A DNA stretch of 64,000 bases from positions 186,001 through 250,000 of the forward strand of contig NW_020845843.1 in NCBI RefSeq assembly GCF_003704095.1. Direction: 5' to 3'. The position numbers and the translations under genes were made by a program. Below are positions 8,603 through 51,701 of the stretch, in pieces. Under the pieces are notes generated by a model that saw nothing but the letters and a program-made list of their open reading frames with translations, did not search any database and had not been told where the DNA came from. Each line of letters starts with the position of its first letter. Position 1 is the stretch's first letter. Source of the stretch: Pocillopora damicornis (taxonomy: Eukaryota).

Positions 8603-11600
8603 ATGTGTGATAAATTGAAGCACAAGATCGTTAAAAGCGAAGCAAAACCAGATAAAGTCACGGCAGTCGCACTTCATGTAGACGAAGATTGTCCTGATGG
8701 CGGGTACGGTTGGATCATTTGTATGGCTGCTGCCATCATTCAGTTCATTATCCTGGGTATTCATAACAACTTTGGAATTCTCTACACCTCTTTGATAAGC
8801 GATCTTCATTTTAAACCTTCAGATGCAGGTAAAAATTTCAATTTTCAAAGATTTACAGGGGAACTGACTGATTAGTTGTTCAAAAATTTTGTCGGGTAAT
8901 CCGGGTTATGATTGCATGCAAAACAAAAATTATTCTGCGCCTTCGAGACGAAGGGCTCTCTTCTCTTTTTTATATTATTTTCAATACTATATTTGCGTCG
9001 TACGCGAATGAACTTGTTCATCAAGGGAAAGTCTGTCTGTACGGGGCGCCAAGAGCGAATGAATTATTAAGCCGTTTTTATTTACATCTATCGAAAGAGT
9101 CAACTCGAAGATTTTTCTATCATAGTTAGAAAAATGTTGTCGTTTAGGAAAGGAAATAAATTGAAGTAGAAAAGGGGTTGCACATTTTTTTTTCTACATG
9201 GCGATCCGTTATTTGAGACCTCTAGTGAATATAAATTTTCTACTTACGTAACATATTAATAAGTTACTTGTATCGTCGGGAAAACCCTATGCCCAGTAGA
9301 GATAAACGCTCAGGTGGCGTGATCAATGTATATTCCACATTCGCTACCTCTGCCTTCTTCTTAGGCCTCTCTGGGTATACAAGGCAATATTTGTTATGTA
9401 CCATAGATTCTTAAGTAGCGTTACTTCATTTCAATTTATCGGTGAACTGCAATTTGCAAGAAAAACAAAGGTCGCAACAACTCGTGATTTCTTTAAGGTC
9501 TCAAAGTCGATAAATCTGGTTAGTGCTTTTTTGCAGTCACGACTGAAAGGATATGCTTGAATTTCGGTGATTGACCTGACTTGTTAATTACCATATTCGC
9601 CATATCCAATTGAATATTAACGGAAAGAGTATAGAGCAATGTTTAATTTTGAAAATTCTTCGGTCCAGACTTGGATGAAGAGGCCGGTCATGCGCGATCC
9701 AACGTCATTGATCAGTTTTCTTGTGAAAGTTTACTCGACAAATGTTCTGTGTTAGGGCCAAGTTGCTGAGTCACTATAGTTATGTGCCATGTTTTGGTTT
9801 GATCTGACTAGCATAATCCCACAATTATTTTCAAAACTGTGCGCCAATTTAGACAAATTAAGTGAAACAATCATTTTTACCGTCGTTCGTGAAGATTGGC
9901 TGCGTGTATTGGAAGAACTTAGGCATGAAGCAACGAAGGATAAAAGGTTTAAGTGCGTAGTCTGTGATTAAAGAGTGACCGCGCTAATAACACTTCACTC
10001 CCTACTCTTTAGCTTGGGTTGGTTCCATTGCGTTTGGGATGAACTTCCTCTGTGGTCCAATCACCAGCAGCTTATGTCAGAGATACGGCATTCGTTTGGT
10101 GGCGGCGGCTGGAGGTTTTATTGCTTCCCTGGGCCTCTTCCTAACGTCATTCACTAACAGCCTCTACGTCATTTACCTCACTTACAGTTTCCTTTGGGGC
10201 TTTGGCTCCAGTCTAAACTATGCTCCAACTATGCTTGTATTGGGTAAGTAAGAGATCTGTGGCTCAAATGAAAGTTTTTACATGAGAAAGCCAACAACAG
10301 ACACTGCATCGCTGCATTCTCTTTTCACAACTGTTTACTTTCATAAGAGGCCATGAAATCGAAAGGTTGGAGATAGGATAGTCTGAAAACTTTCTTCATT
10401 TTCTATTTACTTCTCCAGGTCAATATTTCAAAAGGTATCTTCCATTAGCAAACGGAATAGTTACAGCTGGAAGTGGTGTCGGCACCTTAGCAATGGGACC
10501 ATTGTTTCATGTCATTCTCTCATCAATGGGCTGGAAAAAAATGCTCAGGATTTTCTCTTGTTTAGGAATTGTCATGTTCATATGCGCTCTGCTTTACCGT
10601 CCCCTCCCTGCTAAGTATAAACGTGCTCAAAAACAGCCTGAAAAGAAGACAAAGTTGTTTGACTTTTCTGTGTGGAAAATGAAGTCATTTGTGTTCTGGG
10701 TGATCTCCATGTCTCTCTTGTTTATTGGCTATTTTGTTCCGTTTATTCATTTGGTAAGTTCGGCAATTTTTATTATAATAAAATCTTATAGTTGAATCTA
10801 TTTCAACAGCAATTCAGATGATGCAAAGGTCTTTACTTGCGTGGGGGTTTCATTGTTTCACTGAAGTGAAACCTTAAGAGACTTCGAGATTCTGAAGCTG
10901 ATGAAAGAACCTTTTTATCGTGCTCTTGATTTGTTGCTCGTGCTAACTTTCATCATTTATTTTGAATAACGCTGAATTACAGTGGTTTAGGTTAAGCGAT
11001 AAAAGGGAACTCGGTAACCGCATATTGACTCAAATAACGTGAATGATCATTTCCTTAGAAGGTCAAATACAAATTTAAATCATACAACAGTGTGACAAAC
11101 AAAAACAGAAAGCTTAAACCGATCGGACTATTTTGCTTAAAACAGCAATTGTATGTGTAAGTTTTGCAGTGAGAAGAATTCCATTCAGTCTACTTGGGCT
11201 TAATACTTTGACACTTAAACAAACATTCTACGTTTCTTTCTTTAAGCCCAATCACGCAAAAAATCTTGGAGTGCCTGGTTATCAGTCCTCTCTTCTGGTC
11301 GGTTATTTGTCTGTCGCCTCTACCGTATCACGGGTTCTATTTGGTCTTATTCTTAATCATCCCAGAGTGAACCGCTTTTACGTGTTACAGGTATTACTTG
11401 CACATCTCTCTTATTTTAATTTTCAGCAGCACACTTTCGATTAATTTGGACGGTATCCAGGGTACTGGATCGAGCCCATGAACTCGACGCTAGCTCGAGT
11501 TCCTGAGTTCAACTCTGGCTACTTGATACCAAATTTAAACATCTGAATGAAATCTTTTATTCTCTTTTAGCTCTGTTTCCTCATGATGTCAGTGACCACC

Positions 11601-30517: not shown

Positions 30518-31644
30518 TTTGATGCGACACTGCGAATAAATCGTTGCACTATCCGTCGGCTCGAGGACGCCTCTAAAGGTTCCAGTCCAATGGGTAGATT
30601 CCCTTCATTTATGATGTTTAAAGTATTATTTTAATCATGAGCGATACTATTGGTCGTTATTTTAAGACGGGCCTTTATCTTAAATTGTCAAGCAGTAACT
30701 ATTGTGAAGGATTAATTAAACAATGCTTCTCATTTGTGCCTCGCAAGCACCTTTCATGTATTCACAGCAGGTAGTTCAGTTACTAAACAGAAATACGAAT
30801 GCTTGTAGAGTTAGTTTGCGGTGTTAATATGCAGCAGCAGTTCAGAAATAAAAGACCCTTTTGAAATCATGTCTTTATAACCAGGTCTCTTGACTTATGT
30901 TATTTTTGGTTTAAATAAAAGGTTTCTTGCTTAGATAAAACTTGGTGTCTTCCTGGGAATTATTGCAAAGCGTGTCAAACAGCTAAAAAGATGAATAAAA
31001 TAAACATGAATTTTAATATTTAAAAATCTGTCCTAGAGTGGCAACTTTTCAAGTCAGTTAGTTGATAAAAGTCTGTATTGAGGTGTCACGGTGAGTGAAA
31101 TTAAAAAATTTGTCGAAACTGTTTATCACTGTGGTGATTGACATTCTCTCTCACGGAAAGAGAAATCTAAATAAACATTTGAAATCAAAGGTAGGTGTGA
31201 CGGCCAGCCAATTTTGAAACTGATAAACGTATGAGCCGATGAACGTGCAAACGACTAAAATCATTTAAACTATGGTCGCATGGGATTTTCATAGTGCAAA
31301 ATCGTGAACAGACCGCAAAGACTAGGAATAAAAATGGTTAAGTCAGCTTATGAGCCAGAGGCTCCATCCTGTCGTAGAGTGTCCTAGTTTAGTGACATTA
31401 AGTGACTTATAGCAATGAAAAAGAAAAGAAAAGATGTGACTGATAAACCGTTAAAGGAAAAGCACGAAACGGAAAACTCACAGATAACGTGATGGGGCCT
31501 TCACGCGAGCAATTTGTCACGTAAACTCGTGTTTCGCAATGCATGGTGGGATATTCAATTCTTGCTGTGCTGGCTTTTGCTTCCTTGTTTGACGACATTG
31601 GAAAGGTCTCGCAGGAAAAATTTAGACTCTGGTTATTCACGAAG

Positions 31645-34118
31645 ATGGTCGATGATCATTGGGCTGCTCGTCATGACAGAAACAAAGTTGACCTCGTCTT
31701 CATTGTCGACTGTACAGGTTCCATGGGTCTTCATATCAAGCAAGCGCAAAAACACGTTCGAAGTATCGCCGAAACTGTTTCGCGAACTGCATTCAACGTG
31801 AAGCTTGGGCTGGTAGAGTACAGAGATCACCCTCCCCAGGATAACTCATTTATAACGAAAGTTCACGATTTTACACATTCCGTAGAGGAAATGAAAAAAT
31901 GGGTGGATGGTATGAGCGCAAGAGGCGGTGGAGATGGTCCTGAGTCAGTGGCTTGTGCTTTGGACGCAGCTTCCAAACTCAACTACAGAAAAGATGCTAC
32001 CAAGATTTGTGTTCTCATTGGTAAGTTGAAGCTTTACGAATAGTGTGGACAGGTAAGAACAGGTACATTAAATATTATGTGAAATTTTTCAGATGATCTC
32101 TGCACCTTGGAACAGTTTTGATAAAAATGTTACAAACGATTGTGTAGGAACGAGCTCGATGGGAAAAAATCCGAATAGATATCACTGGTGTTGGAGAACT
32201 TTAATTACTGGTGTTCACTTTTTCACGTGGCATTTTTAATTTTGTCGTATTTCTCTTCAAAATCTGTTGTGAAAGCCGTATTTATCTGGATCCTCGTGGA
32301 GAGGTCATAGTTTTACGAAGGAAAATAGTTTGAATGGTAAACATCACCCTGGATATTTGTATTCTTGTAAATAAAATTCAGATCATTACTCACATATTAT
32401 TGTAGACACAGTCGTTTGTTCACTTTCTTTATTAATTAGTTTACAGGATTATACTTATTTTTAACACCAATTTTGAGCAGTGATGTACTTCGTTATGGAA
32501 TTATTTGATCCTATCAACATACTATGTACATATACATCCTAAAACCACTTCATTTGAAATTATAACACTGCTGTATTAAGCTCTGATTCTCAGAGTAATT
32601 CCCAGTCTCCATTTTAAGCTTCCCAGCAGTACCTTATTGTTTTGGTGATTATAATATCGTTTTAATGTGACAGACATGTATCTTCAGATTTACATTTACT
32701 GATGCTTACATTTAAAATTTACCATTTTGATAATAAAAACTACAACTCTGACTGGGAAGTACTTGATGAGAGCAATTCCACAAGATAGGGCACTGTAGGT
32801 TATTATCTGATAATAATGTCATAATTGAGGTGATGAATGGTAAATTTACTGGAGTCTTCTTTATTCTTTCAGCTGATGCCCCTCCTCATGGACTTGGACT
32901 AGAGCATGATGGTTTCCCTGATGGCTGTCCAACAGGCAATGACCCTCTACAGGCTTGTAGAGCTATGGTGGAGAAGGGAATTGTACTGTACTGTGTTGGA
33001 TGTGAACCAAACATCCTACGCTACAAAGATTTCTTTATGGGTTTGGCATACATAACTGGTGGCCAGTATGTTCCTCTCTCCAAAGCTCAGGGATTATCAA
33101 AGGTTGGAATTTAAGTTAAAGGAGCCACAGTGTGTTTAATTCATGTCGTTAAAGGTAGATTGCTATTTAAGAAAATTTGTGCCAAATTTATGCTGAAATT
33201 TACCTGATAAAATTTTCACATCCACCATTTTTAAGACATGTTGTTTTTTGTTAGCCATCTCATTACATCTATTAAATATATTACTGCTTAAAATTCATGA
33301 CAAAAGTAGGTGACACACCGTATTGAACTCACTAGTACATACAATTTTTTTTAAAAAAGGCATTTTTTAAACAAACAAAGCAAGTCTTACTAATGTGACT
33401 GCAGTGTGCTGGAGAGTAGACTTGGCATAGCTCACCACAGAGTTCTTCACAGTAGAGAGTCAGAGTATCAGAATATGGAATGTAAAGGTTTAGGGTTGGA
33501 TTGTTTGTGGGGTACTTAAATGTTTTCTTTGTGTCATGTTCTTGACAACAGGAGTAACATCTTTCTTTAATTGATGCTCCAACTAAAAAGCTATAATCAT
33601 CTGTCTTATTTTATCATTAACTTCCTGTTTTGTAGGTAATAATAAATGCCTCACTTGAGGAGGTTGCCCATGAGAACATTATGGGATATGTTGAAGACTT
33701 CTTAAACATGGCCCTTGAAGAAATGAAAGGAAAGAAACAGAAGGTAACAGTAGATGACTTGGCTGAAAAACTTCAAGAGCATTTGAACCTGAGAAATGTC
33801 AAATCCCGCCAACTTCAGTGCAACTCTGCAGAACTCCAGCCCCCCACACCAACAGCAAAGAGAATTTCTGGGTTAAAAAAATTGTCACAAGTTCAGCAGT
33901 TCCTGGAGAAAGACACTCCAATGGACTACAGATTATTTTACATGAACAATGTCACAGTGGAGGTCACCATAACTGAGCCAGCAGAAGTTACTAAACTCTT
34001 GTCTGAAAGGTTACTTACGAAGGCACTTGGCAGGCAGAAAATACCTGTGGAACATGATGAAGAAACTGGTGAGATAACCATTGAGCCATTTATGTCTGGA
34101 GCAAGTCCTGCAGTGTAA
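31645..34118 (+). CDS. Stand-alone VwkA-type von Willebrand A domain protein (~362 aa, 3 exons) with intact MIDAS
   Basis: Exons 31645-32020, 32873-33102, 33636-34118. Motifs: DLVFIVDCTGSM, LGLVEYRDHPPQD, ARGGGDGPE, KICVLIADAPPHG, DGFPDGCP, TGGQYVPL. An in-frame upstream ATG exists at 31543. Confidence 0.9.
33420..33570 (+). mobile_element. Decayed SINE copy (same family as 1080-1335)
   Basis: catagctcaccacagagt...aaaggttt...gtgggg...ttttctttgtgtcatg..cttgacaa resembles the reverse complement of the 1080-1220 segment. Confidence 0.5.
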
Positions 34119-35302
34119 CTGAATGACATTTTTATGAAAAGGGTTTCAAGAATTTTTGACACAGATTCATGACATGTGCGGAAGTATTCAAGTGGACTCC
34201 TACAACACAGTTTATTTTAGCCAAGAACCAACTTTCTCAAAAGCTTTTTCCTTTTCCTGAACAGCAGTAGGTTAGCCCCTTATCCAGCACATAACTTCAA
34301 GTATCGCCAAATATCAATTTATGGGAACCATGAGGGAACCCATGTATGGTTACTATTTTGTTGTGAATTGTAACATAGGAAATATCCTTGAGTAAGGAGT
34401 AAAGAAACTTGACAATGAATTATATTAATAGTGGTAGAGTGTTGTTAGTCTCCAATGAGACAACTTTATTTTGCTTGTTATGAGGTTTAAAAGGCCTCAA
34501 ATTCTTTAAGTTCAATTATTTTACCATCAAGTTTTTTTTATGAATGGGAAGATTAGCAGCTTTTCTCTGCAGTTCAATAACAAAGTTGACACAAGTGATG
34601 CAGTTACATTATGTATTCAGCAGTTCATTTAAGAGGTTACAAACATAAATGTTATGATTACCTTCTTCGGAAGAACAACTGTTAACCTAGGTCTTTTTTG
34701 TCTCACCACATTTAATGATCTCCTTTTTAAAAATCCATTTAATTTTCTTTTCTCTTTGATTATTGTTACAAAGTAAATACTCCTGTAAACATGACATTTA
34801 TGAACTGAATAATGTTAATGCTATTTTTAACTGAACTTATACTTAAATTATGATCCTGTAGAAAAACTGTACCTCCATTCAGTCCTCAATTAACTTTGAT
34901 TATCATTTCGAACTGAATATCATTATTTTTTTGCATCTATCGAGTAGGATGTTACTCTGCGTTGAAGTACATTTACCTTTTCGTTCCAGCCCTTCTCCCC
35001 TATCTCGGGAGAAACTAGATCTCAGTTCACCTCTTCCATTTGCAGTCCTCGTGAGGCTCTGTGCGGTTTCCCAAATGTCGCGAGGTTGTGCTATTGTGTT
35101 GAAAATCTTTTATGATACTAATGGCACTAAAGTTTCTTCTTTAAAGAATGCAAAATTGGTAACACTTGGGAATAGTTTCTCTTGAGTTGAAATAATCTTA
35201 CATTGGAAAGCACACTTCAACTCTCGAACACTGGGAGAAGATTGAGGATGGAGGTTGGAAACTAGAGCATCACTTCCGTCTCTCGTAATCGTTGCTCGAT
35301 CC

Positions 35303-38300
35303 ATGGCTACCCATGGAACTGCGTCAAGAGTAGTTGTCTCGGGAAAGCGTCTTTTGAACCCTTTCCGTACTTTTCTACATCGTGTATCCTCTGAAATCTT
35401 AGAAGAAGACTTGAAGTCTTTGAAATTTATTTTGGCAGATGAAATTCCTGAGGGAATTTTGGAAAATTGTCAGAAGTCTACGGATTTGTTTTCCTACATG
35501 ATAAAGAAGTGTCTTATAGGAGAGAACGATCTGGATTTCCTTGCAGAACTTTTCCATTGCATTAACCGATCTGATCTTGCAGAGCGTGTTAAAGTTTTTA
35601 TAAGTAAGTCTCCCTCATCACTAGGAATGGGCAGCGCACCCATAGCACAGGTGACTCGTGAATTGCCAGGTAAATTTCATATTCCTACCTCCAACCCTAA
35701 ACTATCAATCTTAATTATTAATTTTCATTGTGTGACCAGCTATTTAAATTAAAATTGAAGTAATCAGTCGTAAGGAATGACAGCAAACAAAGAGCAACAA
35801 GTTGTCGTAGTGAGCGAATTCGAAGTCGGGAGGGTCGATGGGGTGAATGCAGATGCTAGTATAAGGATTATTGTCAGTGAGGGATTGTGCCGTGCCAGTG
35901 AAGGGAAACCTGACTCAACCAGAAACCTTAAAAAAATTTGCTCATGTATCTGTCAGAAAGTTTCTCCATCTAGTGCAGATTGTGGTGAATGGATAAATTT
36001 ACAAAAACCGTGACTTTCGGTCTGTTGAAAAAAAAACTCATGGACTCACTCTGTGATGTGTGAGCAGCTTAATTTCAAGGCCTCTTTATTTGAGCTCTGT
36101 TAAGAACACCTGACCTGGATTCTTAGATCCTTTTTCAACACTGTTTTTTCTTTGGAAAGATTGTGACAAGTTGATATAGATAGGCCAGGCTGGCCTGATT
36201 TCTAAGTCTTGGTTTTTTTTTTTGTGATTGATTTATGTGTTTTATATACAATCAATACAGTTGATCGAATGGTACCCAAAACTGTTTATCAGCCCAAAAA
36301 AATAGACATATCTACAATAAAGGGGAACACCATGTGTATGATTAGGACATAGTAACATTTTCTTTTCTTTCTTTTCAGCCATGGGAAAGGCTATGGTTCG
36401 CTTCATGTTATCTGGTAATAATATTGACCAAAGAGCCACCCTCCAACAATTGAAAATTGGAATTTGTGCAGCTCTTCGAATAAAAAATTCTGATATCAAC
36501 TTTGTTAAAACAGAGGAGGAAGCTAATAACTCAGCCTGCTTCACCTTTCAAATCCCAAAGAATGATGGGCTGTTAAATTCACTCCGTAATGATGCCCTTC
36601 AAAAAGAGGACTGGCTTTGTCAATGTGGAATCCAGGCAGTGAGGGTTGGTGGAGATGCAAGTTACATTTGTCTTGTTCAGCCACTCACCCATCCACCTAA
36701 GGATACCCAAGCCAGACTTTCACAACTACTTCAGGCAGAAAGTGGTGCAGGTATTTACATGTGTAGTATGACATCTTGTAAGCTATCACTGTGGAGTTAT
36801 CTGACCCCTCTAAGAAATATTTTTCTTGGTGAGGTTATGAATTGACCTGACTGATCTTCCTGTTGGTATAGGGGTGCCACCCATGGCTCAGAACTGTGAC
36901 CTTAAATAGGCCAAAAAGAAAAAAGAATACCTAGCCTGTGAATAACAGGAACTGATCAGCAACAAATATCTAGCTTTGATCTCAACTGCAACTGAAAAGG
37001 CTGATTGAGGCTTCTATTTTATGTATATGTGATGTAACAGGAGTCAATTACCTGTTCCCTGCTGCCTATGGCCCTTCTTTGAAATAGAATTTACCAAAGA
37101 AAGAGATCAAAACCTGGGGCAGGAGTATCTGAACAGAGATGGATACAAAGTGATAACTGAATGGTATTATGAAAAAGCCTTTACCTAAGGGGGTATAAAT
37201 GCAGAGGGGGGAGGGGGTGGAGTATTTGGAACCCCTTGATACTTGAATTTGATTTTTAAACTTATTTTTCCCTATACTAGATTTGAAGTGGAAAGACTTT
37301 GTTAACAAAGACAACCTGGATTTGATTGTTGTTGTTGAGCGTACTAAGAATCGTAAGTTTCATACAAGACTTAAAACTCAACTGGCTCACTTGGTTGAAA
37401 TGATTTGTGTAAGAGATTACAACTTCCGACTTGCCCTAGTTTGTTATCAGGATCACACTTTTCCTGTTTCCAATGCTATCACTTGGTGGTTTACTAAAGA
37501 AAAAGATGTCATGAAGTCCCACATACATTACCTTAATGAATCTAGAATACCATGTTCAGAAAATGGGTTGGCTGATGGTCTTGCACTGGTACAAGATTTA
37601 GCAACTAAAGAAGATTCAAAATCATGCCGGAAAGATGCCAATAGAGTTTGCATACTACTGCGTAAGTACTGTATGATGGTTAGATGTAGTGAACTGAACA
37701 GTTAATATGCTGGACTCTAAGTTGAGAAGTAGAGTTTGGAGACCTGGCTTTGAGTCATTGTGTCGTGTTCTTGTGCAAGACACTTTACTCTCCCAGTCCC
37801 TCTCTCCACCCAAGAGTATAAATAGGTACTGTACCTGTGAATTGTCAGGGAAATCCAATGAAAAGCTGGATAACCTGTGGTAGACTAGCATCCTATCCAA
37901 CTTGAGTAAAACATAATGAAAAAGCTGACAAAACCACCAGCTAGGGCCACTTGGTTTGAGTGCTGACTATAATGGAATTTACATGATGGAACCTGATATG
38001 AGTTTTCCCAAACTTTACTATCACAGTTATTCTTTCCACCCAAGAGTATACACTATAGGTGAATATCAGTGAACCATTCCCAAGTGATTGCTGGGTGTGG
38101 ATCCTAAGGTGGCTTAACACCCTGTCTTCAAAGGGAGGGTGTAGCAATATTCTTAAACATGTCATGCCTTAGGAAACAGAGATTATGACTGGCTCCTACT
38201 TTTAGTAGAGTTTATATTATTTGTAAGGGTTTAATGCTTATGAATTAACCAATCTATTGGTTTTTTTAGCTTCAGTGAACGAGAGAACCTCCCTAGAAAC

Positions 38301-39550
38301 ATACAAGTGTTCACATGGCCACGATGTGATGAAAATTTGCAGACAGTTGGCAGAAAATTCCGTCACCCTTTACACAGTTGGAATCATGCAACCCACAACT
38401 GCATCCCCTTTTGGAAGAAACCCATTGCCAGAATTTTTTTCAGGAATATCACTCAAAACTGGAGGTCGTTACATCCAAACACAAAACATCAAGCAGCTAC
38501 CAGTGGTAATTTTCAACATTTGATAAGAAAACTTTTTTTAGTAATTTTATTGTGCACGTTCTGCATCCAATTCATTAGTCCCTCTTTCCACATACCAGCT
38601 CTTCTGAATTTTACTTAGACAAATTACATGCAACATTGGTCTCTATTGACTCAAAATTTGCCATCTTTGGGACCTACTTTTATAACTTGATGATGGAGTG
38701 TGACCTAAATTTTCAATTTTATGCTTGCATGAGAGAATAAATCAAACTCACAGTCCTGATTTTTTGTAGTCAGTCAATTGCCTACCATACCAATCCTGAA
38801 ATGTCTTTCAGATAGAAAGGCGTCACATAGCCTCACAAAGAGTGTAGGTGAAAACTGGGTTTGGTGACTGCTGTGTGATATCATTTGGGAATTTGTGTAA
38901 AAACAAATTCTTATTTTGCAAGTTTCTTTTAAAATCTATTCCATGTTTGGAGCCACCTAATTTTTTTCAAACTATTTAGAGATTTATTTTTCTGGAAAGA
39001 CATTTATGGCATTGGTGCTGATTAAGAGTTATATCCTAAATCCTAATTCTGTCATCCTTGTTGTTAAGAATCTACAATATTTCTCCACTCACAGATTATA
39101 ATGTGTGCCATTAAAGAAGATCTATCCTTGGAGCGTCTCATTGGCACTGCACATGATATAGTCCTACCACATGTGATTGAGAAATATGGAGATGTTAATG
39201 TAGAAGAGCTTACCAAGATGCTTAGAGAAGAACTTAATCGAAGATCCTGCCTCGCAAAAAGCATTGTACTGCAAAACGGTGTGAGTGTTCTGCGTGAATC
39301 TGAGTTAGCGCAGAAGTTGTCTTATGATGAGGACTTGGAGAGTGCTTGTTGCACTTTTAGAGAAGGTGTTAAAAGATTGCAGCAAGCAGAAATGCCTACA
39401 AATGGATTACCACAAGATGTGGACATGGAGAAGGTGACTAGTGACCTGGCGAGAATTACAATATCAAAAGATCAGGAAATCACTGATGATTTGTCAGAGC
39501 GACTTGTTCGCAAAGTTGGACATCGGGCTTTTTACTGCACTTCATCCTAG
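35303..39550 (+). CDS. DED + putative TRADD-N-like domain + degenerate vWA protein (~603 aa, 5 exons)
   Basis: Exons 35303-35669, 36379-36750, 37281-37661, 38270-38505, 39095-39550 join in frame. Exon 1 is a death effector domain (FRTFLHRVSSEILEEDLKSLKFIL..DLF..LDFLAELFHCINRSDL, RxDL motif). Exons 3-5 align with the neighbouring vWA gene and share both of its intron positions. Confidence 0.88.
37690..37900 (+). mobile_element. tRNA-headed SINE with a conserved central domain (ancient metazoan SINE type); second partial copy at ~38030-38190
   Basis: gtcattgtgtcgtgttcttgtgcaagacactttactctcccagtccctctctccacccaagagtataaataggtac...gactagcatcctatcca. Family recognised from memory, not from a search. 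Confidence 0.65.
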
Positions 39551-40618
39551 GACTGATTGAAATAGGTATTTACTTTTGTCAATAAACAAAATGCTGGAAT
39601 CTAATTGGTTCTTAACTGCCTTCACATGTTCCTTAATTTGCAATGTTTGCGCAGCACCAAACAGTCCAGTTTGATCTACCTTATTTCAACCACCTTGTAT
39701 TTGGTAAGATCAAATCAGTTATTTTAAAGAGGTATTGAAAATACAGTACTAAAAGGCACCAGCCAATGTCATTCAACCACTCCACTGATACTAACCAATC
39801 AAAAGCAAGGAGACTTATAAGTAAGTAACGTTGTTAATTTCAGCCTGGAAACATGAAATTGATGAGAATGATTGGTTGAGCTTTTTGCTAATGCATGAAA
39901 TGAGATGCCTGTCTTGTCATTTGACACTTCATGCCTGAGTTTCTTGCATTTTGTTACTGACAAAAATTAATTAGTAATATGACTGAGAAGTGAATACTTC
40001 AGGTGTAAAAAGATAGGCTGTTGGATATTCCAACGTCTAGCTTTTTTTAACAAGTCAAAAAGTTATCACAGTTTTCACTTATCATACATGTTAATATTTT
40101 TAATGTTACCTAAGAGTTAGTGACATTAAACTGATCTCTGGAGAACTTTCTCAAAGCTAAGAACTGCACAGGTATTAAACACTGCTGTACTAATAATAAA
40201 TTCAATTTATGAGTTACAAACACATTATAACTTTCTTGAAAACTAGCATATATATGTGACTCTGCTGAAATGCTACAACTCCTTTTTAGAACTAAAATTT
40301 GACATTAAAGGCCTTTCATCTTGTCAAAAAGTTTTATTAAAATAAACCTTGTAGTTAAAAGGGTTATTCCTTGCAATTTAACTTTCTCTGTATCAATTTG
40401 CCTAGAGCTACTCAAAGTACCTTGCATTTTACATCTACATCCTCTTTACATTGGTATTCCAAATCCTCTTGAGATACATAAGGAACCTGCCAACATAATG
40501 TTGTGGAAAATTCCAGGAGGGTCAATTTGCAGTTTGGCAATCATTGTTCCCTTTTGCTTCAAGGTGTTAGCATTCTTCTGAAGTGACAAGTGCACATAGC
40601 ACATAGGCCATGTTAGGC

Positions 40619-46084: not shown

Positions 46085-46949
46085 ATGGTACGCCTTGGTC
46101 TTCGCTTCTTGCTCTTTGGTAGGACGGTCGCACAGAAAGCAAAAGGACGCGCTCTATTGAAAGAGTCTCGCGAAGCACCACATAAAGGTCTTTACCACGG
46201 AGAAACTTATGTGTTTGGCTACAGAACAACATGGTCTGGCAAAAAGTAAGCTCAATAACTCAAAACTTAAATTCAAGGCATAATCCTGGTATGATTGAGT
46301 ACTTTTATGAGAATGAGTCAAGCAACGGTTCTAAAAACAGTAACCTTGAATAAAATATGAATGTTAAACTTAGTTACTCACCTCAAGAAAAATTTAGCAT
46401 ACTATAGAATAAAAATAATTGAATATTGTTCCAGTTGACCTATTTATTTAACAATGTAATTTATTTTATGTACTTGATGTGTTAGAATTGTAGATAAATA
46501 TCAAGTGAAGTGGTGGCTTGTGAGAACATTTGTATAATTTGTAAAACTTTTTACTAAAATATGTTTTACCTATTATCACTTTACCAAGAACTCCACGAGT
46601 GTGGAAGCCAAATGTCTTTGAAAAGACATTCTACAGTCAAGTGTTAGAACAAGACTTGTCACTGAAGGTCAGTGTGCCTGCTCTGAGATGTATTGACAAA
46701 GCTGGTGGACTTGACAATTACATCATTAACACACCTGAAAGAACTCTGCATTCTAAATTAGCTATTGATCTCAAGAAACTTATGGTGTGGGTTGTCAAAT
46801 GTAAAGAAGAAGGTGTGGAAATGGAGCAGATCAGGAGTGAGGTTTTTCCCAAACCAAGAATAAGTCGTCATGTTCACATTCCAAAAGAATATACCAACAG
46901 ATTTTACTTTGATTGGAAAGGACCTCGCAAACAGATGGTGTTTTGTTAG
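46085..46949 (+). CDS. MRPL28: Mitochondrial ribosomal protein bL28m (~173 aa, 2 exons)
   Basis: Exons 46085-46245 and 46589-46949. Arg/Leu-rich presequence-like N-terminus; L28 motifs KGLYHGE..FG..KKTPRVWKPNV..FYSQVL..ALRCIDKAGGLDNYII. Confidence 0.92.
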
Positions 46950-48017: not shown

Positions 48018-51000
48018 TCATGCCATTTGGTATTTCCCAAGGAGTTTGGTTAGCACTTGCACTGGTTTGCTTATAATTTCCCTCACTCTATTAGCCAATT
48101 CCTGGCATTCTTGGTGGTTGAATGATTCAAACAAATTTAAACCTTCAATAAAATAATGGGCACAACTCTTTGAGCGTAGACACTTTTCCAACCTCTTAAG
48201 GAGGCCCATGAATCGAACATCCAAGGTATCTCTCCACTCTGAGGCATTAGGGTGGGACTCGCACTCATAGAGTAAGAGTGTTTTTAGATGATATGACTTC
48301 AATGGCTTCAGGTTAAGTTCTTCTCGAAGAGCCTTCACTATTCGGAGAACTTTCTTTCGGCAAGAGTTGGCTTCATGTTGCCCTCCTTGAAGGAATAGCC
48401 TCTTTTCAGCCGCTGAGAAGGAATAACGCCACAGGAATCCTTTCTCTTTGTAAGCAATGTTGTGACCCTTTGGTTGCTTACCTACCAGATGACATCCCTC
48501 TCTGCAAATTTCTCTCACAAGATTGTTATTGGGCCAACCTTTTCATAAGTAAAAAAAAAGCCAATGTTAAAAACTTTACTGAAAAATAACATACAGCTAG
48601 AATAATACAATCTTTCACAAAATATTTTGTGTTAAATATTGTGAACCAATAACTAAGAAGCACTGCCCTGTATATTTTAATAAAATAATCTCTGTAGATG
48701 TTAGTGTTTCTTTCACATTTAAGTGATTTCAGTGCATGTTTAAATAACTGTCTTTCCATGCCAATGAAAATTCATTAAGTGCTTCAACAAAACTTTTCAG
48801 ATTATATTTTGTTAGTTTATTTCTATGATAGAAATAATTTTTTTTCAACCATTTTGAATGTTAGACAGCAATAAGTGCAAGTAGTTGACAAATAATTGGT
48901 ATAGAAAAGTTTGCTGATTCCTGAACTTTATGGCCATTAGGTAAGTTAAGGTGTCAATAGTGATATTACCAGTTCTGGGCCTTGTTTTCCATTCTTCAGC
49001 TTCTTCTGGCCAGGTTTTCTCCTTGATGGCAAGTGTCAAATCAATAGAATATTCTATTCTATTTGTGCTAGTTATTTTCAAGGTCACTGCTGGGCCTTCA
49101 GACTTAACAGCAACATTCCTAAATTTCAGAATTATTAGAGTATCAGGTTACTTTTTCGGCTAGGCATTATTTCCCACTATGATCCTTTAAAACATTTTGT
49201 TATGATAGATTGTATAACAAGGTGGCTGCCTCTGCACAAAGTAGGCAAGATAAAGACAAACCCTTGTTCTGATTAACCTAAATCCCTAACCCAGTAATAA
49301 TTCTCTATCCAAAAATTCATGGGACTGTTGTCATTGTTGCTTTTATGTTTCTAAGTCCTTTTCTTTCCAGCTGAGTACTCTTTGACACATTTCCTCTCAT
49401 TTTAGAGGGCTACATCAGTGTTTTGATCAAGGATGGAGCCAAAGGAAAGAAAAACCACCTTAATGATTTTAGGGTATGGATGCCATTTTGGAATAAGTTG
49501 ATCACTCCATGCACTTAGGGAGAAATTTACACCTATGTTCCCCCCTTTCCCCTCCTCCCCAGATACATGAACAGAACACAATCACAAGACTTTGCGCACA
49601 GAACCAAACCTAGTAAGGGAGCCAGGGGAAAATGAGTTAAATTCACATTTAATACATGAATTGATGAGAATGGAGTGAGTAAGTGAATTTTATTTCCATA
49701 CCAAAACCTCATGGTATGACAGTCATACCACGTGGTAAAAACTGTGTCAGCCCATCCTTATTAAAAAAGCCTTGTACAACATTATTTTTCTATCCAGCAC
49801 TTACAATTGCTGAATAGTTCTTTGAGATTTTAATCATATGCCTGCTCTTTTCCTTTCTTCTTGCATTTTGCCACTCCCAGGGCCTTACTTAAGACTGTCT
49901 TGCTGTTTCCAGTCCCACTCACACTATTGCATATGGCCCTTGCACTAGGTTACTCTTATTATGTTTTTCCTTTATAGGGAACATGCTTGCTTGTCCAGAT
50001 AATATACTCATTAACCCTTTTTTACCTTAAATGCTTTTTTTCCCTGATGGCTTTATCCACAAGCCTTTTAAAAACTGCTTTAACCTGTGAGGCATTCAGC
50101 ATTCCTCTATGGTTCACACAGCTGTCTCTCTTCCAAAGCCATTCTTCGCCCTCGTCAATCATTACAGTGGTAAATCCTGCATTAGAAGGAAACAAAAGTT
50201 TCTGCCCGTGACTCAGCCTGAATGGCAAGGGTATTTCTGGTTATTGCTTTTCCTTCACCTGACCTATTTCCAGTGGTCACTTCTTGCTTGCCAATATATT
50301 TCTTTCCAAGCAGTGAGAAGCAACAACCCAAAATTAGTCTTTCTAACAAGTAACTTGACTAAAATACCCCCTGACTTGTTGGTATTGCAAAGTGAGGAAA
50401 ACTTGATCATACTCTTGTATTTTTTAACACTTGATCATTGTTGTGGTCTATTGAACAATAGGACTTACAACAGAAGAAATACTGGAAAGGAATAAAACAA
50501 GTTGACCCTTATTAATCTGGTGGAGTTTAGGTGACATTTTTAAAAATAGGACTTTTAGATAAGAACCTTATGGCTGAGAGGACATAGTGGTTGTAGACTT
50601 AATTTTTATTTTGATATGTATTACCTTGATGGTACAGAAATGGTTTTCTCGACTTGAAATGTATATCATTAGCTGATCATCAGACATAAAAAATACCTTG
50701 TCTTGGGAAAATCCAAAGGTTTCATTGAGGGCAAGGCGTCGGCCAAATTGACAAACTGTAAGCCTTGATGTAACCCTTGAAATCCACCTCCTTTCAAGAA
50801 TTTTTAGTAAGTGATAATGTCGATGTCCTAACACAGAGTCATCATGGTTCTTCCCCCATTTTAAATCACGTATCTCTACATTGTACATTTTTCCGTACAA
50901 AACGCACTTATGGCGGAATTGATCAAGCTCTGCAATTTTGAATGGCTAAGATGCGGTTTCAGCCTCCAACTATTCAGTTAGGTAAACTAAAAGTTCGGCT

Positions 51001-51581
51001 TCTGAATCATTTAGAGCGGCTAATTGAACTTGGAACGGCAAGAGTGTTCTTACCGTTGTGCTTGGTCGGGGAATTTGGACACATTTCAAACGGTTTTGAA
51101 GCGGCTCTAGCATGAATCAGACACCGAACCCTACATTTCCCAAACCAAATCCTGAATCATAACATTTACGAAGATTTCCTTGAACTGTATTACTGGCACA
51201 CTTCTTGGAGTTTGAATCGGTCCAAATTCAAATAAGGTCTTCTTCATGAAAAGTCAGTGTCTAAACAGGCCTAATCTTACCGATTGGTGGCTCGCTGAAG
51301 CCATCGTCTTCTTCAAATGGTGCGTCATCCAGTTCTAAATTATCCATGATTAACATCAGGTCGAATTCATCGGGCTCTTTTACTTTGGCCCTTTCATAAT
51401 AGCTTCCTGTGGGTAAGATTTGAAGAGCACTGAATCGGTCATCATTCGTTTTCACATATTCTAAGATTTCTTTCACGATAGGCTCCCAACAGTTTAGGGC
51501 TTCTATTTTCCTTTGTTGACGAAGCTGAACAATATTAGCAGTAAAACGATTTAAGATAGTGTTTAAATTCTGTTCACTCAT
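48018..51581 (-). CDS. cGAS-like receptor (cGLR; Mab21-family nucleotidyltransferase), ~373 aa, 4 exons
   Basis: Exons 51581-51281, 50176-50026, 49118-48970, 48538-48018 join in frame. TGSYYERAKVKEPDEFDLML (GS plus ExD), third acidic residue in YSIDLTLAI, WP..W..GWP, WRYSFSAAEK, LKSYHLKTLLL, CAHYFIEGLNLF. Confidence 0.93.
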
Positions 51582-51701
51582 TTTTCCAGTAAGGATCACC
51601 GTTGCAACGCTTTCTCTTATGTATATTTTCTGAAATTTCTTGCAAGTGAAAAAGTGCTTATGGAAGCAATCTTTGATATCACAAACAAGCATCCGGTGGT
51701 T

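Follow-up and report, generated by a model that had tools for sequence, protein, structure and literature searches.

A coral death effector domain gene with a MIDAS-degenerate vWA domain lies directly downstream of a conserved vWA gene of its own lineage

The locus described here raises the question of what becomes of a vWA gene when a copy of it loses its metal-site residues and is joined to a death effector domain (DED), and whether such a copy acts together with the intact gene beside it. The window, by which we mean the whole 64,000-nucleotide stretch of Pocillopora damicornis DNA that was analyzed (contig NW_020845843.1, positions 186,001 to 250,000), contains one such pair of genes on the forward strand, which the original prediction cast as a sensor and a decoy in a candidate cell-death module. 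Cnidarian repertoires of death-fold adaptors are large and barely studied, and the choice between survival and death in coral cells bears on bleaching and disease.

The upstream gene (gene 1, 31645-34118, + strand) was read from the sequence as three exons encoding 362 amino acids. Exon 1 (31645..32020, ending in phase 1) holds the start codon and the N-terminal 125 amino acids of a vWA domain, including the D-C-T-G-S and GGGDGPE loops; exon 2 (32873..33102, ending in phase 0) supplies the second half of the domain, with DAPPHG, CPTGNDP and TGGQY; and exon 3 (33636..34118) encodes a C-terminal helical region (C-ter) with the motif ...T..LSERLL.K and closes with a TAA stop. In the Acropora-type and Montipora-type orthologues, in-frame stops lie shortly before the start codon and support its placement. 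The junction of exons 2 and 3 is borne out by RNA contigs from four poly-A runs, as in a contig at 33634-34918 that covers exon 3 with an overhang equal to the end of exon 2, and the 3' UTR extends to about 34884-34918. A Pfam profile search matched exon 1 to VWA_4 (PF25106, E 2.7e-11) and to VWA (E 3.1e-6). With a functional MIDAS defined by a vWA profile match together with DxSxS, a loop Thr or Asp and a later Asp, the vWA of gene 1 is apparently MIDAS-competent as judged from its residues, all of which are present (D-C-T-G-S, with Thr replacing the first Ser; GGGDGPE; A-D-A-PPH); the loops are kept in all orthologues seen, with one small change in each in the Acropora-type copy. Identity to other corals is 73-91% for exon 1 and 78-95% for exon 2, and the vWA exons retain 54-66% identity to mollusc and rotifer members of a family of 703 homologues (340-440 aa) found in cnidarians, molluscs, rotifers and an annelid, with conservation of the C-terminal region confined to Anthozoa. 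Gene 1, with its length of about 360 aa and its D-C-T-G-S/GGGDGPE/DAPPHG motifs, is a typical member of these vwkA-like stand-alone vWA proteins (Pfam VWA_4). Mollusc members are annotated as 'VWKA-like' or 'Alpha-protein kinase vwkA', a label from which gene 1 departs in having no kinase domain; the family is functionally uncharacterized. Gene 1 is the ancestral-type protein of the pair and its transcript is separate from that of gene 2, with no RNA contig from the four poly-A runs spanning gene 1 into gene 2.

The downstream gene (gene 2, 35303-39550, + strand), read from the sequence and RNA contigs, has five exons and encodes 603 amino acids. The start codon and the DED lie in exon 1 (35303..35669, ending in phase 1), which is followed by a symmetric exon, phase 1-1 and 372 nt long, for a middle domain and short linker (exon 2, 36379..36750), the first half of a pseudo-vWA with E-R-T-K-N and GLADGLAL (exon 3, 37281..37661, ending in phase 1), the second half, where DAPPH is absent and C..GHD and TGGRY are kept (exon 4, 38270..38505, ending in phase 0), and the C-terminal helical region (...IT..LSERLVRK) with a TAG stop (exon 5, 39095..39550). 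All introns of both genes are GT..AG, and the contigs of the four poly-A runs bear out each gene 2 junction (35669|36379, 36750|37281, 37661|38270, 38505|39095), with one contig running into exon 5 from 39094. The contigs begin at 35045-35133, placing the start of the 5' UTR at about 35045. Spliced contigs connect exons 1-2 to exon 3, and the reading frame is open and spliced as modelled through all five exons, as the original prediction had held. Gene 2 is a genuine, expressed gene on a single spliced mRNA, and its exon domain assignments together with the spliced contigs place four modules, DED, TRADD-N, vWA and C-ter, in that order on one polypeptide. We favor the reading, at a probability of roughly 0.6, that gene 2 is a member of an anthozoan family with this architecture and a DED adaptor derived from the gene 1 lineage, most likely with an output in apoptosis or immune signalling.

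The DED said to have been added to the copy is confirmed, matching Pfam PF01335 at E 1.5e-21 and 76.8 bits against a curated cut-off of 35.9. The hydrophobic patch and the RxDL motif of DEDs serve homotypic assembly in FADD and caspase-8, and both have counterparts in gene 2: an F-L type patch in helix 2, here with F-I ('slkfi', aligned to the 'slkfl'/'sfkfl' of caspase-8) and R-S-D-L in helix 6 ('nrsdl', aligned to 'nrldl'). The best matches by score are caspase-8 DED1/DED2 (E 1.7e-17) and FADD (E 2.5e-8), and the family profile also matches the DEDs of PEA-15 and cFLIP.

The further domain of about 120 aa that had been claimed is present on the phase 1-1 exon, and both hhalign and an AF2 model lead us to name this 124-aa module, on profile-profile and fold-class grounds, as a predicted TRADD-N domain of the NCOA6 clade. 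The exon was also an atlas lead, with a score of 0.86. Its family profile aligned with the TRADD-N exon of the genome's own NCOA6 at 93.9% probability (E 1.6e-7) over 44 columns in the C-terminal half of the domain only; that NCOA6 exon is the only PF13820 match in the genome (33.7 bits against a cut-off of 22.5). Direct profile search gave no PF13820 match in gene 2 exon 2 at E<=1, and among 12 members of the middle-domain family one matched (E 0.093). The model predicts a beta-alpha-beta-beta-alpha-beta order (strands at 3-11, 40-47, 51-59 and 84-89, helices at 17-32 and 62-73; decile-mean pLDDT 79-90 over residues 1-90) and is ferredoxin-like, with matches to ACT and S6 at Z 7-8.3 that denote a generic fold class; TRADD is absent among the structural matches listed. 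In the part of Kaur et al. 2021 (PMC8195603) available to us, a conserved motif of a tiny residue plus Ser is described in the beta2-beta3 turn of TRADD-N. In the window copy the corresponding turn is A-N-N-S. The Porites and Montipora-type copies have A-S at this place, Acropora has A-P and the P. verrucosa paralogue has G-V.

Gene 2 might instead be an inhibitory DED regulator which, like cFLIP, PEA-15 or DEDD2, caps or sequesters DED assemblies, or is nuclear, and so dampens caspase-8-type signalling; the profile matches to PEA-15 and cFLIP would fit this, as would the single DED without an enzymatic effector domain and the precedent of vertebrate DEDD2, a negative regulator with DED and TRADD-N according to the same source as far as it was available. 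The caspase-8 and FADD DEDs nevertheless score as closer than those of cFLIP and PEA-15, and the TRADD-N of gene 2 is assigned to the NCOA6 rather than the DEDD2 clade. We regard an inhibitory role as unlikely.

The remainder of gene 2 is a copy of gene 1, and the tandem paralogy that had been proposed is upheld by BLASTP alignments of exon 1 with exon 3 (27% identity, E 8e-10), exon 2 with exon 4 (30%, E 7e-10) and exon 3 with exon 5 (27%, E 3e-7) of genes 1 and 2, respectively. These alignments reach the exon ends, and both shared introns are therefore identical in position and phase. No Pfam VWA match was obtained for gene 2 exon 3 by profile search, and it is only through gene 1 that vWA homology is assigned to exons 3-4; two members of the fused clade match Pfam VWA at E 0.017. 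The AF2 model of the C-ter is helical at low confidence (pLDDT 46.5), with no confident fold. The change of D-C-T-G-S to E-R-T-K-N at the DxSxS position is evident in the BLASTP alignment, as had been described, and of the two loops thought to be lost, DAPPH, which holds the later Asp, is truly gone, but GGGDGPE has been replaced by GLADGLAL rather than simply lost. The replacement recurs in the fused clade with minor variants (GLAAGL in the Acropora-type copy, GLADAL in Porites), and its G..DG spacing is kept in most members. The MIDAS is degenerate in nearly every member (clade consensus D-C-A-T-T), and one (P0004) retains a canonical D-x-S-x-S loop. From these residues we infer that the vWA of gene 2 has lost metal binding.

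Such losses, together with the missing Pfam vWA match and a very long branch, could be taken to mean that gene 2 is a pseudogene or a duplicate near loss and its fusion an annotation artefact, and the TRADD-N exon of one dispersed paralogue in the same genome is indeed interrupted by an in-frame stop. For the gene 2 of the window this explanation is practically untenable, and is refuted by its splicing in four RNA runs and by a dN/dS for exons 3-5 (pseudo-vWA and C-ter) of 0.27 at dS 0.66, rather than a value near 1; full-length collinear orthologues across Scleractinia likewise count against decay. The ratio is 0.28 at dS of about 0.7 for the whole of gene 2, and 0.34, 0.15 and 0.28 for exons 3, 4 and 5, and the pseudo-vWA is under purifying selection. 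The corresponding values for gene 1 are 0.05 for the vWA core, 0.056 for exon 2 and 0.29 for exon 3, and the fused vWA has about 3-7 times the dN of the gene 1 vWA core. In the phylogeny the pseudo-vWA clade is monophyletic (support 100/100) and nested, on a stem of 2.3-2.6 substitutions per site, in the anthozoan gene 1 clade, itself supported at 100/95 against molluscs and rotifers.

Gene 2 has full-length collinear homologues of 551-611 aa in Acropora, Montipora, Pocillopora verrucosa and Porites, and in Acropora cervicornis an uninterrupted 565-aa open reading frame of this type lies on an RNA-type Logan contig. The head-to-tail arrangement recurs in Pocillopora (the window; L001), a relative at about 70% identity (L011/L012), an Acropora-type assembly (L016), Orbicella (L018) and one further assembly, which places the two genes side by side across both major scleractinian clades. 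No gene-1-type match lies beside the two dispersed gene 2 paralogues of the genome from which the window comes, and no vWA gene lies within 10 kb of the P. verrucosa counterpart of gene 2.

The suggestion that the architecture was new does not stand, as a DED-(TRADD-N)-vWA fusion was described in 2021 and is widespread in hexacorals. In the material available to us, Kaur et al. (PMC8195603) catalogue DED + TRADD-N (NCOA6 clade) + vWA + C-ter in cnidarians, and the source data 1 for their Fig. 4 list it in Stylophora (XP_022799237.1, 603 aa), Orbicella (XP_020605636.1, 599 aa), Nematostella (XP_001635271.1, 619 aa) and also Exaiptasia. Gene 2 has the same four modules in the same order as this family and the same length as the Stylophora entry, of which it is probably the Pocillopora counterpart; by its length and the adjacent gene number, the Orbicella entry is the 599-aa DED gene that follows the gene 1 orthologue in L018. 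The portion of the table available to us holds no Pocillopora entry with this architecture, and the corresponding text makes no mention of a degenerate MIDAS, an adjoining DED-less and MIDAS-intact paralogue or a difference in rate. We found no earlier report of the recurring head-to-tail pair, the MIDAS degeneracy of nearly every clade member or the several-fold faster vWA of gene 2. The function of the fusion has never been characterized.

Under the favored reading of gene 2 as a DED adaptor, an anthozoan copy of the widespread, strongly conserved vwkA-like vWA gene would have gained a DED exon and the symmetric TRADD-N exon at its 5' end, diverged very fast with loss of the canonical MIDAS residues, and stayed under purifying selection directly downstream of its parent. 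The protein would be a cytoplasmic adaptor in which the MIDAS-degenerate vWA and the helical C-ter form a metal-independent module for protein binding or oligomerization. Engagement of a partner by this module may bring the N-terminal DEDs into proximity and nucleate homotypic assemblies with coral FADD- or caspase-8-type proteins, with the TRADD-N at the junction offering a second docking or switch surface. Functional coupling of the two genes is not required by this mechanism.

Such coupling is the substance of the guard/decoy proposal, in which a pathogen factor or stress signal targets or modifies the conserved host protein of gene 1 and the fused copy, by mimicry or by heteromerization through vWA/C-ter, triggers DED-driven caspase activation. 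The recurrence of the pair in several coral assemblies, the descent of the fused copy from the gene 1 lineage with an anthozoan-specific C-ter in common, the loss of biochemical residues in a maintained frame and the faster dN would all suit it. However, a tandem duplication that arose long ago and has stayed intact explains synteny and rate asymmetry equally well, with adjacency as its default outcome; the dispersed paralogues and the P. verrucosa counterpart stand apart from any such neighbor, a dN/dS of 0.27 gives no hint of an arms race, and decoy families typically expand, whereas this one is ancient and of low copy number. We regard the proposal as improbable.

The locus is a transcript-verified example of a catalogued but uncharacterized architecture, to which three testable facts are added: the vWA of gene 2 lost its metal-site residues yet remains under constraint, its ancestor was a vwkA-like vWA gene that is strongly conserved, and parent and derivative are still adjacent in both major scleractinian clades. 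The hypothesis that this opens is that binding between the two proteins controls DED assembly; if it does not, gene 2 is one more adaptor of a known family.

Among known systems, vertebrate TRADD and DEDD2 resemble gene 2 in combining a Death-superfamily adaptor domain and a TRADD-N in one polypeptide, and DEDD2 has the same order of DED then TRADD-N. They differ in the clade of their TRADD-N and in lacking a counterpart of the C-terminal vWA and C-ter, and neither was matched to gene 2 by sequence profile. In plants, integrated-decoy NLR pairs such as RRS1/RPS4 and RGA5/RGA4 offer a looser parallel. Unlike these pairs, genes 1 and 2 carry no NLR or STAND module and lie head-to-tail rather than head-to-head, and the partner, gene 1, is the paralogue that would itself be the putative 'target' and not a helper receptor, with no pathogen link known. 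By extension of this parallel, and as an improbable proposal, the pair could be a two-gene surveillance module maintained from a time before the two main scleractinian clades diverged, in which the slow gene 1 is a hub or pathogen target, the fast MIDAS-degenerate DED-TRADD-N paralogue heteromerizes with or mimics it, and interference with the vWA/C-ter surface of gene 1 would lead to DED-dependent caspase activation, as an animal counterpart of plant integrated decoys. What the coral and plant pairs have in common, by analogy only, is a catalytically or biochemically disabled copy of a host domain fused to a death-signalling scaffold, encoded by linked genes.

The two neighbouring genes singled out in the original prediction, a MIDAS-intact, vwkA-like vWA gene (gene 1) and a DED gene carrying a second, degenerate vWA (gene 2), are a real, expressed gene pair, and that observation was correct. 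As read from the sequence, gene 1 comprises three forward-strand exons (31645-32020, 32873-33102 and 33636-34118; 362 aa) and gene 2 five (35303-35669, 36379-36750, 37281-37661, 38270-38505 and 39095-39550; 603 aa), with GT..AG at every intron of both. Searches with the window proteins were made exon by exon, never as joined spliced models, and otherwise used database proteins by identifier. Pfam identifies a vWA domain in exon 1 of gene 1 (VWA_4, E 2.7e-11; VWA, E 3.1e-6) and a DED in exon 1 of gene 2 (E 1.5e-21; 76.8 bits, cut-off 35.9), and returned no significant match for gene 2 exons 2-5. The DED exon ends in phase 1 and is followed by a symmetric exon (phase 1-1, 372 nt), after which the start of exon 3 marks the exact onset of homology with the first codons of gene 1. 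From there on, each of the three exon pairs can be aligned over its full length, with identities of 27%, 30% and 27% (E 8e-10, 7e-10 and 3e-7), so that both common introns are equal in position and in phase (1, then 0), and the predicted tandem vWA pair with aligned exons and identical introns is borne out. The same alignment confirms the predicted change of the MIDAS loop from D-C-T-G-S in gene 1 to E-R-T-K-N in gene 2 and the absence of the DAPPH loop from gene 2. The GGGDGPE loop, by contrast, is not simply lost as had been claimed: GLADGLAL stands in its place and recurs among the DED-TRADD-N-pseudo-vWA homologues (the fused clade), with the variants GLAAGL in Acropora types and GLADAL in Porites. 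Starting at an in-frame ATG upstream, gene 1 would be extended by 34 aa of hydrophobic, signal-peptide-like sequence (31543-31644). We rejected a signal peptide starting at 31543 because the extension is not conserved, being kept only in the 98%-identical relative and interrupted by in-frame stops in the Acropora-type and Montipora-type orthologues; by this comparison the segment is probably 5' UTR.

Transcription was assessed from RNA contigs of four poly-A runs, from two studies, placed on 33600-39599. In all four runs, spliced contigs omit exactly 35670-36378, 36751-37280, 37662-38269 and 38506-39094, and exons 1 to 4 of gene 2 are carried on single contigs, bearing out the junctions between exons 1-2 and exon 3 on which the fusion depends. 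The contig of gene 1 exon 3 has an overhang that corresponds to the end of exon 2 and a 3' end at ~34884-34918, and gene 2 contigs start at ~35045-35133. A single read-through transcript was rejected because no contig of the four runs bridges 34918-35045; gene 1 and gene 2 are two transcripts. An RNA-type Logan contig of Acropora cervicornis contains an uninterrupted 565-aa ORF with the same architecture as gene 2. We also observed, in 4/4 runs, an unspliced contig that joins the 3' portion of intron 4 to exon 5 (38554-39123), and the word depth of exon 5 contigs lies above that of the upstream exons; intron retention, an internal start yielding an isoform of the C-terminal helical region only, or 3' bias could each account for this.

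Comparison of the window with an orthologous locus of another assembly (L011/L012, a ~70%-identity relative; Nei-Gojobori, dS 0.6-0.7) gave dN/dS values of 0.05 and 0.06 for the two vWA exons of gene 1 and 0.29 for its C-terminal region, and of 0.35, 0.25, 0.34, 0.15 and 0.28 for exons 1 to 5 of gene 2. Pooled over exons 3-5 the value is 0.27, not near 1, and the pseudo-vWA is under constraint, at a nonsynonymous rate ~3-7 times that of the gene 1 vWA core. Together with the exact splicing in the RNA runs, these ratios exclude the reading of gene 2 as a decaying pseudogene. The C-terminal helical region common to both genes was modelled by AF2 with low confidence (pLDDT 46.5).

The identity of the 124-aa middle domain, encoded by exon 2 of gene 2, had to be approached through its family. 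The ESM atlas suggested TRADD-N, as no more than a lead (0.86); TRADD-N was not detected by single-sequence Pfam in exon 2, and member-by-member Pfam gave a PF13820 match in 1 of 12 family members only (E 0.093). A sequence-profile search of the PDB with the family alignment returned DEDs only, neither TRADD nor vWA. An AF2 model based on this alignment has a beta-alpha-beta-beta-alpha-beta order (overall pLDDT 75.5; decile means 79-90 over residues 1-90), and Foldseek and VIA-align matched it to ferredoxin-like/ACT structures (Z 7-8.3, best E 2e-3), with TRADD absent from both match lists; the predicted fold class is compatible with TRADD-N but generic and not diagnostic. The discriminating test was the comparison with the NCOA6 orthologue, which holds the only PF13820 match in the window's genome (33.7 bits against a cut-off of 22.5). 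Aligned by hhalign to the middle-domain profile, this match gave a probability of 93.9% (E 1.6e-7) over 44 columns in the C-terminal half of the domain, and at the level of sequence profiles we assign the middle domain of gene 2 as a TRADD-N domain.

Full-length collinear fused proteins of 551-611 aa are present in Acropora cervicornis, A. palmata, Montipora, Pocillopora verrucosa and Porites lobata, and a phmmer search of 1.84 billion representatives with gene 2 exon 3 gave 13 matches only, all of them fused-clade fragments. The gene 1 family is far broader. Its full-length Orbicella orthologue, XP_020605639.1 (354 aa, found via cluster membership), has 703 homologues at E<=1e-5, including "VWFA domain-containing" or "VWKA-like" proteins of 340-440 aa; gene 1-type homologues were found in scleractinians, Nematostella, octocorals, many molluscs, rotifers and one annelid, with 54-66% identity to mollusc and rotifer members in the vWA exons, a C-terminal region recognisable within Anthozoa only, and more distant relatives such as the vWA in fungal proteins that carry the annotation "elongation factor-2 kinase". 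In trees built from the first vWA exon only, the vWAs of the fused clade form a monophyletic group (100/100) whose stem measures 2.3-2.6 substitutions per site. With molluscs and rotifers as outgroup, this group nests within the gene 1 clade of Anthozoa (100/95), with no single placement favoured inside it (AU p 0.37). Taken together, the common introns, the anthozoan-only C-terminal region and the presence of actiniarian proteins in the published list indicate that the gene 1 lineage was duplicated in an anthozoan ancestor and that the copy then gained its 5' exons and diverged in a burst. A separate long branch unites the window copy with its closest orthologue, and these two have the most derived MIDAS loop (Asp to Glu). 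In the otherwise MIDAS-degenerate fused clade, one member, a 143-aa exon fragment from Logan (P0004), combines GLADGLAL with a canonical D-C-S-M-S loop, which means that MIDAS loss is not uniform in the clade.

Gene 1 followed head-to-tail by gene 2 recurs in five other assemblies: a Tara Pacific scaffold 98% identical to the window, the ~70%-identity relative, an Acropora-type assembly (its fused gene corresponds to the protein of A. cervicornis), Orbicella faveolata (a 354-aa gene, then a 599-aa DED gene) and one further assembly. Both major scleractinian clades are thus represented among the assemblies with the pairing. The Porites sequence compared reaches 600 bp upstream of the fused gene, and the Montipora-type loci end short on the side of the expected partner. 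As a rival and less likely reading, gene 2 might act with gene 1 as a guard/decoy pair. The conserved order, the unequal rates and the lost biochemical residues are compatible with this, but tandem duplication gives adjacency by default, and there are dispersed paralogues without a gene-1-type neighbour. The window's genome has three fused copies, the window copy and two in tandem, ~18 kb apart, on the reverse strand of another contig (C1500:44315-47882 and 62600-65965); in the latter, the TRADD-N exon is interrupted by an in-frame stop, which may mark a pseudogene or stem from an error in the assembly. A paralogue exon is ~95% identical to its counterpart in P. verrucosa. The P. verrucosa counterpart of the C1500 copies (L009:6431-7759, GCA_036669915.2), around which no vWA gene was found within 10 kb, has a Bcl-2-family gene directly upstream and a TMEM183-type gene downstream, so that two apoptosis-related genes adjoin there. 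In the ~70%-identity relative, the stop of the fused gene is followed at a distance of ~4.2 kb by a further DED exon (L011:19002-19295; 46% identity with the DED of gene 2); no counterpart was found in the window. The window also holds a Mab-21/cGAS-like gene on the reverse strand ~8.5 kb downstream of gene 2 (48018-51692; Mab-21_C on the 48021-48518 ORF, Pfam E 6.4e-30, with weak Mab-21 NTase matches on two exons) and, as ordinary neighbours on the forward strand, a ribosomal L28 family protein exon (46599-46949, E 3.7e-8) and MFS transporter exons (10493-11444, E 2.2e-5).

The best-supported reading is that gene 2 encodes a cytoplasmic adaptor. Its MIDAS-degenerate vWA and helical C-terminal region would serve metal-free partner binding or oligomerisation, upon which the DED, which keeps the hydrophobic patch and RxDL motif when aligned with caspase-8 DED1/DED2 and FADD, may nucleate assembly, through homotypic contacts, with proteins of the FADD or caspase-8 type. 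A second docking or switch surface could be provided at the junction by the TRADD-N domain, as proposed for this class by Kaur et al. (PMC8195603). An inhibitory, cFLIP/DEDD2-like role is an alternative to the adaptor on which the sequence does not decide. The architecture was originally thought novel, which does not hold, and a literature search on TRADD-N plus coral found no functional study. The new facts are modest, namely the conserved pairing, of which we found no mention in the available text of the 2021 paper, the degenerate MIDAS and the rate asymmetry, and they make the pair hypothesis testable. The layout of gene 2 is itself known, catalogued in 2021 though uncharacterised: the available text of Kaur, Iyer, Burroughs and Aravind (eLife 2021, PMC8195603), in treating cnidarian NCOA6-clade TRADD-N proteins, gives the same architecture for Orbicella XP_020605636.1 (599 aa), Nematostella XP_001635271.1 (619 aa), two Exaiptasia genes and Stylophora XP_022799237.1, which at 603 aa equals our gene 2 model in length.
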